From NCBI GenBank assembly GCA_025594325.1, contig JANHCV010000001.1, positions 4,464,001 through 4,528,000 on the forward strand: a stretch of DNA of 64,000 bases. Direction: 5' to 3'. Below are positions 38,958-42,567 of this stretch, piece by piece (positions within the stretch are counted from its first letter, which is position 1; every line of letters begins with the position of its first letter). The notes beneath the pieces are model-generated. The model was given only the letters and a program-made list of their open reading frames with translations, was not told where the DNA came from and did no database searches. This DNA is from Blastocladiella emersonii ATCC 22665 (taxonomy: Eukaryota; Fungi; Blastocladiomycota). The position numbers and the translations under genes are program-made.

Positions 38958-40616
38958 TTAGTTGGTCAGCGCGGGCGGGGCCGTGGTCACGGCGCGCGGC
39001 GCGACGTTGTTGACCGAGTTGGCGAGGTGCTTGAGCCGCTTGCCCTGGTGGAACTCGGCAATGTTTTTGAGCGTGACGCCGGCGATCTCGCGCAGCGCCT
39101 CCTCGGTGAGGAACGCCTGGTGAGCCGTGATCATGACGCGGTTCTGGAACGAGAGGAGATGGGCGAGCTGGTCGTTGGTCACCACCGAGTCGCTGCAGTT
39201 CTCGTAAAAGTAGTCGTTCTCGCCCTCGACAACGTCGAGGCCGCACGCGCCGACCTGGCCCGACTTGAGCGCCTCAATGAGGGCCTTGGTGTCGACGAGC
39301 GGGCCGCGCGACGTGTTGATGATCAGGACGCCGCGCTTCATCTTGGCCAGCGTCGTCTCGTTGATGAGGTGGTGCGTCTCGGGGAGCAGCGGCGCGTGGA
39401 TCGAGATGATGTCCGACTGCGCGAGCAGCGTGTCCATCTCCACGTACTGCACCTGCGGGTTGGCGAGCAGCGCCGGGTTCTTGTACACGTCCTGGCAGAT
39501 GACGCGGCACCCGAAGCCCAGCATGATCGACACGAGGCACGCGCCGATCTTGCCCGTGCCGATGATGCCGACCGTCTTGCCCTTCATGTCGAACCCGACG
39601 AGCCCATCGAGCGAGAAGTCGCCGTTGTGGACGCGCGACGACGCCCACACGAGCTTGCGGTTGAGCGCCATCATGAGCGCCGCCGCGTGCTCGGCGATCG
39701 CGTTGGGCGAGTACCCGGGGACGCGCGCGACCGAGATGCCGAGCTTGTCGCACGTCGGGACGTGGCACGTGTCGAAGCCGGCGCACCGGTAGGCCACCAT
39801 CTCGATGCCCATGTCGGCGAGCGCCTGCGCCACCTCGGGGTTGACCGAGTCGTGCACGAACACGCACACGGCGTGCGCGCCCTTGGCGAGGTGCACCGTG
39901 GCCGGCGACAGCTTGTCCTCGAGGAACTCGAGCTTGAAGCCGAAGCCCGGCAGCGCGTTCTGCTCAATGAACAGCTTGGTCTGGTACGGCTTGCTGTCGA
40001 ACACCTTGACCACGAGGTTGGCCGCGTCGCGCGGCAGGCCGTTGGGCTGCACGTCGACCGTGGGCGTCGTCGCGGTGGCCGCGTTGCCCGCCACGACCGA
40101 CGTCGACGACTTGACCGAGGGCGCGACCGCGTCGGGCACGTGCGCGGCGAGCGCGGGGAGGAGGGCGAGGGCGAGCGTGGGCTCACGCGCGAGCAGGGCC
40201 TGGAAGGGCGCGCGCGAGATCTGGACCAGGAAGCACGACGCGGCGCCGGCGGCGAGCAGCGTCGAGGGCGAGCGCGAGTCGGCAAACAGGTTGCCGAAGC
40301 CGAACGAGTCGTACGGGTGCAGCGCGCCCGCGTGCTTGCCGGCCTGGTGCACGTGCAGCTCGCCCTGGACCAGGATCGCGAAGATCTGCGGCGTCTGGCC
40401 CTCGGACACGACCACCGTGCCCTTGCCGACCTTGATGGGCTCGGCCACCGCCGCGAGGAGGGCGAGGTGCGCGTCCGACAGCTGCGCGAACAGGCGCGTC
40501 TTGGTGAGCACCGCCTGCAGGCCCGCCGGCGTCGTCACGTCCACCTTCTTGGCGGGCGAGCTGGGCATGCTGACCGTGGGCGCGGGCGCGAGCGAGTCGA
40601 CGGTGTTGGGCGACAT
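38958..40616 (-). CDS. ldhA: NAD-dependent D-lactate dehydrogenase (LdhA type) with N-terminal cyclic-nucleotide-binding-like domain; intronless
   Basis: N-terminal LFAQLSD..L..LA..GTVVVSEGQ....FAILVQGEL.V…FG (cNMP fold). C-terminal VFDSKPY, CVFVHD, RCAGFD, RVPGYSPNAIAEHA, GIIGTGKIG, SIHAPL, INTSRG.LVD, GLDVVEGE and MITAHQAFLT. Confidence 0.92.
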   Translation of the reverse strand: MSPNTVDSLAPAPTVSMPSSPAKKVDVTTPAGLQAVLTKTRLFAQLSDAHLALLAAVAEPIKVGKGTVVVSEGQTPQIFAILVQGELHVHQAGKHAGALHPYDSFGFGNLFADSRSPSTLLAAGAASCFLVQISRAPFQALLAREPTLALALLPALAAHVPDAVAPSVKSSTSVVAGNAATATTPTVDVQPNGLPRDAANLVVKVFDSKPYQTKLFIEQNALPGFGFKLEFLEDKLSPATVHLAKGAHAVCVFVHDSVNPEVAQALADMGIEMVAYRCAGFDTCHVPTCDKLGISVARVPGYSPNAIAEHAAALMMALNRKLVWASSRVHNGDFSLDGLVGFDMKGKTVGIIGTGKIGACLVSIMLGFGCRVICQDVYKNPALLANPQVQYVEMDTLLAQSDIISIHAPLLPETHHLINETTLAKMKRGVLIINTSRGPLVDTKALIEALKSGQVGACGLDVVEGENDYFYENCSDSVVTNDQLAHLLSFQNRVMITAHQAFLTEEALREIAGVTLKNIAEFHQGKRLKHLANSVNNVAPRAVTTAPPALTN

Positions 40617-40770: not shown

Positions 40771-40777
40771 TTTTATA
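40771..40777 (-). promoter_or_regulatory. TATA-box candidate (TATAAAA) for the D-LDH gene
   Basis: + strand ttttata at 40771-40777, ~155 nt upstream of the ATG at 40616, standing out in GC-rich context. Confidence 0.5.
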
Positions 40778-41128: not shown

Positions 41129-42567
41129 TCACGATGACATGGCCGCGCGCCGCGCCGACCGCGTCCGCCGGCCGATCTCGGGCGACTCGCCGCCGTCACC
41201 ATCTCCGCCGAGCGCCGCGACCTCGTTGCGCATGGCCGCAATCAGGTCCGCGTCCTCGGGCACCATGGTGGCCGCGTCCTCGTCGTCGGTGCCCGACCCC
41301 GAGTCGCTGTCGCTGTCGCTCTCGCCGCCCTCGTTGACGTCGTCGTCGTCCTCGGCCGCCGCGGTCGTGGTGGTCGGGATCACATCCATGCGGTCGTCCT
41401 CGTCCGACGAGTAGGACGGATCGTCGTCCTCGCTGTCGCCGAGGTCGCCGGCCGCGAGAAGCGCCGCCGCGCCGCGTCCCACCACGACGACCGGGCGTGC
41501 CGCCGCCGCCGGTTCCTCAGCGGCCGCGGTGGACTGGATGATACTCGCGCGGTGCGCGCGGATGTACGCCTCGATCGGTCCCGCGTCCTCGACATCGATC
41601 ATATCGAAGCTGACGACGCGCTTGCCGTCGGCGTCGCCGCCCTCGCCTGCCTCGACGTGCGCCGTGACCTGGAGGTCGACCTTGCTGCGCCCGTTGGCGA
41701 CGACGGCGAGCGCGTGGACGCGCGCGTGCGGGATCCACAGGAACGGCTTCTTGAGCCCGAACACGAGCCCGTCGGGCAGCAGCCACAGGAACCCGTCCTT
41801 GCCGCGCAGGTAGCACTCGACGTACGCGTGCCCCGCGCGCTTGCCCATGGCCGACTTTTTGGTCGACGTGAAGTCGGCTGGCGTCGCGACGGGGACGCCC
41901 GTGATGCGCTCGAATGCGGCTACGTTAGGCGCGTGTCAACAACTCTGCTTCCCACCGCTCCGCCTCAAAACGGACCAGCAAACGACTCGCTCCCGCCAGG
42001 CACCTGCGCGAGCGCGGCCTCGGGCACCGTGAGCGCGACGACCGCGGGCTCGAGCGCGCCAAACGCCGCCGCGTGCGCGGTCCCCGTCGCCTCGGGTTTG
42101 CCGAACAGCAGCACCATGCTCTGCTTCTTGGTCTTCTCGGGCACCGACACGACGACGGCCTTGCCGAGATCCGCGTGTGCGACGTGGTGCACGACCGCGC
42201 CGTCCGCGCCCACCAGGTACACGCGCGCCGCGTCCAGCACCACCGTGAGCTTGCGGCGCACGGGCGCCGACACGGACACGTCCGGGATCCGGACCAGCGG
42301 GTCCGTCGGCGCGTCGACAGGCGTGGTGGTGCGCGCGCGTTTCGCCGCGGGCGTGCCGGGCGCCGAGTCGTCCTCGGGCACGGCGCCGCGTTTGTTGGAG
42401 CTGGAGAGCGCCTGGATTACGTCCGTCACGACGGCGGCCTGGTCGGCCGACAGCGCGGCGACCAGCGACTCGACGCGCGCGAGGAGCGACGGGTCGTGCG
42501 CCAGCGCGGCTTGCCACGTCCGGCCCGGGGACGACGGGGTGCTGCTTGATGATGCGGTTTGTTCCAT
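41129..42567 (-). CDS. RTT106: Histone chaperone Rtt106-like (tandem PH domains, acidic tail; 1 intron)
   Basis: VSVSAPVRRKL, YVECYLRGKDGFLWLLPDGLVFGLKKPFL, SFDMID..D and Asp/Glu-rich C-terminus. Confidence 0.8.

Follow-up and report, generated by a model that had tools for sequence, protein, structure and literature searches.

The window analysed here, a 64,000-nucleotide stretch of the Blastocladiella emersonii ATCC 22665 genome (contig JANHCV010000001.1, positions 4,464,001 to 4,528,000), encodes on its reverse strand a protein made up of three consecutive parts: an N-terminal cyclic nucleotide-binding (CNB) fold, an Ala/Thr/Ser linker predicted to be disordered, and a complete LdhA-type D-lactate dehydrogenase (D-LDH) (Table 1). 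The joining of a CNB-type domain and an intact fermentative D-LDH in one gene, proposed in a preliminary description of the window, is confirmed. Because 98% of the length of the protein aligns to a 541-residue protein of Catenaria anguillulae PL171 (P0002, 68% identity), the stop-free open reading frame (ORF) can be read, as proposed, as a single intronless gene. Its opening residues, MSPNTVD, align with the MSPITHD opening of the Catenaria orthologue, which supports the choice of ATG; this codon, in the context GCCACCATG, is a putative translation start by resemblance to the consensus only. A protein search recovers the product's own database entry (P0001) at 100% identity, and the best matches are blastocladian, including a partial D-LDH of Blastocladiella britannica with 78% identity. 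The fusion is far beyond chance, since the best match to a D-LDH in the PDB has an E value of 1.6e-89 and full-length orthologues occur in other genera. That two adjacent genes or a bacterial contaminant were read as one fusion has next to no probability, and is ruled out by the single stop-free frame, the chromosome-scale contig, a GC content equal to that of the surroundings, the same fusion in four blastoclad genera, and an LDH tree that follows this grouping.

The enzyme half exceeds the Pfam cut-offs for both PF00389 (2-Hacid_dh, residues 212-533, 85.6 bits) and PF02826, the Rossmann NAD-binding part that interrupts it (2-Hacid_dh_C, residues 313-501, 173 bits), and residues 201-527 match the PDB sequences of the Escherichia coli (3wx0), Pseudomonas aeruginosa (5z20) and Salmonella (4cuj) enzymes with E values of about 1e-89. 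An AlphaFold2 (AF2) model of the whole protein, with 69 homologues as input, has a mean predicted local distance difference test score (pLDDT) of 88.9 and a predicted template modelling score (pTM) of 0.69. Its C-terminal two-thirds are matched by Foldseek to the P. aeruginosa and E. coli D-LDHs with target-normalised template modelling scores (TMt) of 0.90-0.96 and 42-47% identity. The GxGxxG, INTSRG and H-Q-A motifs named in the preliminary description are all present, the first and last as GTGKIG and AHQAF. The substrate-side Tyr302 is invariant among the 69 homologues and aligns with its E. coli LdhA counterpart, and Asp376, in ICQDVY, is the acidic residue after strand beta-B, a position that would specify NAD rather than NADP. 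The curated NCBIfam D-LDH models give strong matches that stay below their cut-offs (the best being vanH_gen at 238 versus 540 and PRK08605 at 177 versus 356), which we attribute to bacterial tuning; the validated LdhA structures, matched at an E value of 1e-89, are the better guide. We infer that the gene product is an active NADH-dependent D-LDH, that is, an LdhA-type pyruvate reductase, located in the cytosol. A six-frame search of the assembly (32.65 Mb, 21 contigs) identified this as the sole LdhA-type locus, the next-best match having 31% identity over residues 269-464, part of the NAD domain.

The N-terminal domain is a true CNB fold in the predicted structures. A beta-barrel of this kind had been placed at about 40140-40500 of the window, which corresponds to residues ~40-159 and agrees with the full-length AF2 model, where the helices and strands of the domain span residues 30-159. 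Pfam PF00027 (cNMP_binding) is matched at residues 62-144 with 32.8 bits against a cut-off of 27.5 (E value 7e-8). Modelled alone, residues 24-165 reach a pLDDT of 94.3 and a pTM of 0.86, and the best Foldseek matches are the CNB domains of PKG, PKA-R, CRP, MlotiK1 and SthK, with query-normalised scores (TMq) of 0.64-0.80. The top 50 matches are all CNB-type domains, and at least 500 have an E value of 0.001 or better. The Ala/Thr/Ser linker that follows was also recognised correctly, and is found in the translation at residues ~161-199. It is short and conserved in bacterial relatives and long and disordered in blastoclad ones; two segments, residues 166-179 and 186-193, are insertions relative to the bacterial homologues and fall in alignment columns that are gaps in 81-90 of 92 fusion-length homologues.

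Table 1. Features of the CNB-LdhA gene and its surroundings (window positions; residues are those of the encoded protein)
Feature	Residues	Window position	Strand	Basis or remarks
Complete single-exon coding sequence	1-552	38958..40616	-	552 aa; ATG start; stop codon 38958-38960; no internal stop
N-terminal tail	1-29	40530..40616	-	Predicted disordered; no recognised domain; AF2 pLDDT <50 at residues 1-21
CNB-fold domain	30-160	40137..40529	-	N-terminal helices, eight-stranded beta barrel, then B/C helices
Pro76, at the site of the beta2-beta3 loop Gly (Gly169 of PKA RI-alpha)	76	40389..40391	-	Column is Gly in 64 of 92 family sequences
Non-canonical phosphate-binding cassette FGFGNLFADSRSPSTL	105-120	40257..40304	-	Family alignment; comparison with the PKA-R-like cassettes of the genome
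Ala/Thr/Ser-rich interdomain linker	161-199	40020..40136	-	Predicted disordered; AF2 pLDDT <50 at residues 162-186
LdhA-type D-LDH, catalytic and NAD-binding domains	200-533	39018..40019	-	PF00389, PF02826, PDB, Foldseek
NAD-binding glycine motif GTGKIG	353-358	39543..39560	-	G353, G355 and G358 invariant in 69-sequence alignment
Catalytic Arg437, in INTSRG (433-438)	437	39306..39308	-	Invariant in 69; aligned to the NTSRG Arg of E. coli LdhA (3wx0)
Catalytic Glu466	466	39219..39221	-	Invariant in 69; aligned to the second Glu of YENE in E. coli LdhA
Catalytic His499, in AHQAF (498-502)	499	39120..39122	-	Invariant in 69; aligned to GHQAF of E. coli LdhA
TATAAAA, putative core promoter element		40771..40777	-	~155 nt upstream of the ATG; consensus resemblance only
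Upstream neighbouring ORF		41129..41848	-	239 codons

The ligand site of the CNB domain is degenerate. Canonical phosphate-binding cassettes follow the motif FGE[LIV]AL....[PV]R[ST/A]A, in which the Arg anchors the phosphate and the Glu contacts the ribose (PMC2246266). When a PKA-R-like cassette from the same genome, FGELALMYNAPRAATVVA, is aligned without gaps to the LDH-linked cassette, FGFGNLFADSRSPSTLLA, the Glu is replaced by Phe107 and the canonical Arg by Ser116, while Arg115 lies one residue before the canonical Arg position and Pro117 and Ser118 take the place of the small residues. The FG, Leu, Thr and final Ala anchors are kept, and the ungapped frame is fixed by FG, Thr119 and Ala122. 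The preliminary description, according to which the Glu is lost and the Arg shifted by one, thus read the cassette accurately. The PKA-R-like gene has two canonical cassettes, FGELALMYNAPRAATVVA and FGELALLSDKPRVATIRA, and the divergence is therefore specific to the CNB-LDH gene.

We compared the cassette and the coupled loop position across the 92 fusion-length homologues. The family consensus, aGEMSLFxxxxRSATL, is near-canonical, with Arg in 75 sequences, Ser/Thr in 80, Ala in 80 and Thr in 75, and with Glu in only 33. The loop position gives an independent line of evidence. According to a 2007 census of CNB domains, a Gly between strands beta2 and beta3 co-evolves with the cassette Arg, and families whose cassette is non-canonical respond to other signals (PMC2246266). 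Both residues are present in 64 of the homologues and both are absent in 17, a group that includes all members of the eukaryotic clade; Arg without Gly occurs in 11 sequences and Gly without Arg in none. This pairing gives a nominal Fisher p of 1.5e-11, a value that ignores kinship and describes a pattern, not a probability. Bacterial members have a near-canonical cassette (GEMSLF....RSATL), whereas the fungal clade lacks the Arg, the Glu and the coupled Gly. Bacterial members are probably responsive to cyclic AMP (cAMP) or cyclic GMP (cGMP); the window protein, to judge from these substitutions, has probably lost canonical cAMP/cGMP binding or retains it in much weaker form.

The interpretation that we favour, with some confidence, is that the gene encodes an active cytosolic D-LDH with a regulatory CNB-fold module in which canonical cAMP/cGMP binding has probably been lost or has become much weaker. 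The dehydrogenase would be tethered to its N-terminal regulatory domain by the disordered linker of ~40 residues, and the CNB domain could act on it through a conformational switch, or as an autoinhibitory or oligomerisation module. The fungal domain would no longer serve as a canonical high-affinity cAMP/cGMP receptor, and would either sense another small molecule or act without a ligand. Several observations count against this proposal. The disordered linker and the pTM of 0.69 give no predicted interface between the CNB and LDH parts, and allosteric coupling is thus an inference; a predicted complex of residues 24-165 with residues 195-540 has a score of 0.00, which counts neither for nor against an interface. 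Arg115 is conserved in Blastocladiella, Catenaria, Allomyces and Sorochytrium, and a one-residue gap introduced by HMMER puts it on the canonical Arg, so that residual cyclic-nucleotide binding is possible. Loss of the cassette Glu by itself is presumably compatible with cAMP binding, as in the Epac proteins, which lack this residue.

These last points lead to the control that the preliminary description had suggested, in which the CNB domain binds cAMP or cGMP, so that a second messenger acts as a direct switch for lactate fermentation and NAD+ recycling, for example downstream of the zoospore cyclases. The fold on which this idea depends is genuine, with a Pfam score over the cut-off, and bacterial homologues have the near-canonical GE...RSAT cassette. 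The cyclic-nucleotide machinery assumed by that description is also abundant, since class III nucleotidyl cyclases account for at least 15 loci in the genome, and CNB domains for at least 16 besides the LDH-linked one. Three of the cyclase loci lie within ~18 kb (contig C13:6942-25258), two of them with identical scores, an arrangement that fits the tandem duplication reported for the B. emersonii genome (PMC9730499). The LDH-linked domain, however, ranks with the lowest-scoring PF00027 matches of the genome search (36.9 bits, versus up to 78), and in the ungapped frame its Arg, Glu and small Ala positions hold Ser116, Phe107 and Pro117/Ser118, with Pro76 at the coupled Gly. Arg115 adjoins the canonical site and is found in the window protein as well as in Catenaria, Sorochytrium and both paralogue groups of Allomyces, but the chytrids and the closest environmental relatives have Arg at neither position, and the site therefore lacks the constraint expected of a phosphate anchor. 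Because the phosphate-binding Arg, the ribose-binding Glu and the co-evolving Gly are all replaced, second-messenger control is doubtful here, and we consider direct cAMP/cGMP switching of this enzyme unlikely.

Conservation within the blastoclads bears on what the domain might do instead. Between genera, identity is 45-56% in the CNB domain and 74-82% in the LDH half. The best-conserved CNB 9-mer, DSFGFGNLF at residues 103-111, comprises the first half of the cassette and a short helix (0.69 versus a domain mean of 0.44). The C-terminal helices at residues 148-160 are the second-best conserved block, and conservation in the half of the cassette that carries the Arg is lower than average. Given the identity retained among genera and the position of the cassette helix as the best-conserved block, the domain is still under constraint. 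In the fungal clade, what has stayed most conserved in the domain is the cassette helix (FGFxNLF) together with the C-terminal helices.

One tentative possibility, which includes the alternative of the preliminary description (control by another purine nucleotide), is that the CNB fold now recognises a different ligand and serves as a metabolic sensor on the enzyme, for instance of GTP/ATP, another nucleotide, a keto-acid or a glycolytic intermediate. CNB folds with non-canonical cassettes are known to bind other ligands, such as heme in CooA (PMC2246266). The high conservation of the cassette helix and pocket entrance (residues 103-111) would fit such a role, but conservation is poor in the second half of the cassette and nothing points directly to any one ligand. 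A 1971 J Biol Chem paper on fungal D(-)-lactate dehydrogenases, cited in PMC2768740, reportedly describes their allosteric inhibition by GTP, as its title states. The relatives of the window protein also include oomycete D-LDHs that lack a CNB domain (e.g. Phytophthora P0020), and the GTP sensitivity of fungus-like D-LDHs therefore need not involve this domain. To take the CNB domain as the site of the inhibition named in that title is to stand on thin ground. A more specific version, in which the CNB domain of zoosporic fungi senses a non-cyclic ligand such as GTP or ATP and is the physical site of the inhibition reported in 1971 while the bacterial homologues are gated by cAMP or cGMP, seems to us improbable.

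The domain could also be a structural module that functions without a ligand, in dimer or tetramer assembly, in localisation, or in autoinhibition relieved by a partner or by phosphorylation of Ser/Thr residues in the linker. All three canonical ligand and relay residues are lost, the long Ser/Thr-rich disordered linker is specific to blastoclads, and the C-terminal helices are highly conserved. On the other hand, the cassette helix is conserved above the rest of the barrel, a bias that a purely structural role does not obviously call for, and no partner or modification is known. We regard this, too, as a minority possibility, about as likely as a ligand other than cAMP or cGMP and likelier than cAMP or cGMP themselves; the rest of the probability goes to a domain with no part in regulation. 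We continue to favour a regulatory CNB-fold module, in one form or another, attached to an active D-LDH.

The architecture is neither rare nor unique, and it is present in fungi and in several bacterial phyla. A protein search retrieved 4300 relatives, and about 95 of the best 120 of these matches carry PF00027, PF00389 and PF02826 in the same order with 87-98% query coverage. Among the blastoclads it is found in Catenaria, Allomyces macrogynus (AMAG_08720, P0004, 61% identity), A. arbusculus, A. javanicus and Sorochytrium milnesiophthora, and among the chytrids in Borealophlyctis, Fimicolochytrium and Podochytrium. It also occurs in a probable ichthyosporean with the EukProt entry prefix Awhi, which we take to be Abeoforma, and in bacterial metagenome-assembled genomes (MAGs) of Opitutaceae (P0032, 44% identity), Hydrogenedentes, Spirochaetales and Planctomycetes. 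The alignments of P0002, P0004 and P0032 cover 91-98% of the query. Some of these fusions already carry the name 'cyclic nucleotide-binding domain-containing protein' in public records, and the architecture is thus known from databases, functionally unexplored, and not first revealed by this window. In searchable papers and preprints we found no description of a CNB-LDH fusion, the matches being irrelevant co-occurrences, and no characterised enzyme of this architecture, in line with the earlier statement that none was known. The B. emersonii genome paper mentions neither lactate nor a CNB-LDH protein (PMC9730499), and a census of 30 CNB families includes no dehydrogenase and does not mention lactate (PMC2246266).

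To place the enzyme half, a quick maximum-likelihood (ML) tree was computed from 131 LDH domains of the best matches. The LDH domains of the fusion proteins form one group, with a Shimodaira-Hasegawa-like approximate likelihood ratio test (SH-aLRT) value of 88. Within it, those of the blastoclads are one group (SH-aLRT 99) and sister to two chytrids (94), and in this unrooted tree the blastoclads and the chytrid pair together are sister to the bulk of the bacterial fusions, with a few standalone bacterial LdhA sequences nested inside. The CNB-LdhA proteins form a widespread fusion family, probably an old one, that zoosporic opisthokonts share with several bacterial phyla. Since the root was not inferred and the sampling is of best matches, we do not choose between vertical descent accompanied by losses and transfer one way or the other.

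The closest enzymes of known structure are the LdhA proteins of Gram-negative bacteria (E. coli 3wx0/5z1z, P. aeruginosa 5z20/6abj and Salmonella 4cuj), which have the same two-domain fold, catalytic Arg/Glu/His and NAD motif. Unlike the window protein, they are ~330 residues long and have no N-terminal sensor domain, and their known allostery is homotropic. The CNB domain, in turn, shares its fold with those of PKA-R, PKG, CRP and MlotiK1. Of the cassette it retains the initial FG, and of strand beta7 the Thr/Ala anchors; the Glu, the canonically placed Arg and the beta2-beta3 Gly are missing. Canonical CNB domains are attached to kinase, channel or DNA-binding domains, whereas this one is attached to a metabolic dehydrogenase. 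A mechanistic analogue is mycobacterial Pat, a cAMP-regulated protein acetyltransferase in which an N-terminal CNB domain with a functional cAMP site is fused to an enzyme. Its catalytic domain is different, and the NCBIfam match of residues 42-95 to the Pat model (E value 0.0029) is far below threshold, at 16.5 bits against a cut-off of 460. The joint loss of the cassette Arg and the coupled Gly has a parallel in CooA, FNR and NtcA, where it is tied to a changed ligand or signal (PMC2246266); these are bacterial transcription factors, unlike the dehydrogenase of the window.

Substrates or sugar phosphates are the usual regulators of lactate dehydrogenases, and a second-messenger-type sensor on a terminal fermentative enzyme would be a new coupling of signalling to redox balance. 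If both the fungal non-cyclic sensor and the cAMP/cGMP-gated bacterial enzymes were real, they would together be the first case of a CNB module that directly gates a terminal fermentation enzyme, with a ligand switch inside one family. Blastocladiella is a model for cGMP-based phototaxis and a lactate-producing fungus, and as this is its sole LdhA-type gene, any regulation would bear directly on NADH handling. The family is large and extends across fungi and bacteria. Its bacterial members with an intact cassette are an obvious place to start looking for cAMP-gated LDH activity, and the fungal members offer a view of the CNB fold after loss of the phosphate anchor, a natural contrast inside one family.

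Several further observations concern relatives of the window protein. Allomyces has a second CNB-LDH paralogue group (P0005, P0006, P0007 and P0009) of 695-801 residues, with an N-terminal extension of ~170 residues that starts MPVLALAAQLAPRAARRA and resembles a mitochondrial presequence in its richness in Arg, Ala and Ser; its composition suggests a differently targeted copy. A CNB-LDH fusion filed under the beetle Zophobas morio (P0086) groups with the probable ichthyosporean P0081 (SH-aLRT 98) and may come from a symbiont or contaminant in the beetle assembly. The neighbourhoods of P0034 and P0101 are ordinary bacterial ones and contain no conserved cyclase, transporter or fermentation partner. 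At the P0101 locus, on a JGI metagenome contig, two genes for SulP-STAS-CNB transporters occur within 6 kb of the CNB-LDH gene, and CNB domains are therefore joined to several unrelated effectors in that organism. Many other eukaryotic relatives (P0008, P0010-P0015 and P0020-P0025; ~660-960 residues) have two or three tandem LdhA-type domains and no CNB domain. They come, among others, from MMETSP transcripts, Durusdinium, Phytophthora and the basidiomycete Gymnopilus dilepis, and since in most of these proteins the LdhA halves fall in separate sister clades, the internal duplication is old.

Two minor features of the locus itself may be added. A 581-codon ORF that runs antisense to it is of the kind commonly seen opposite GC-rich coding DNA and was not taken as a gene. 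The neighbouring ORF upstream (Table 1) encodes a product whose C-terminal half is acidic and rich in Asp, Glu and Ser.

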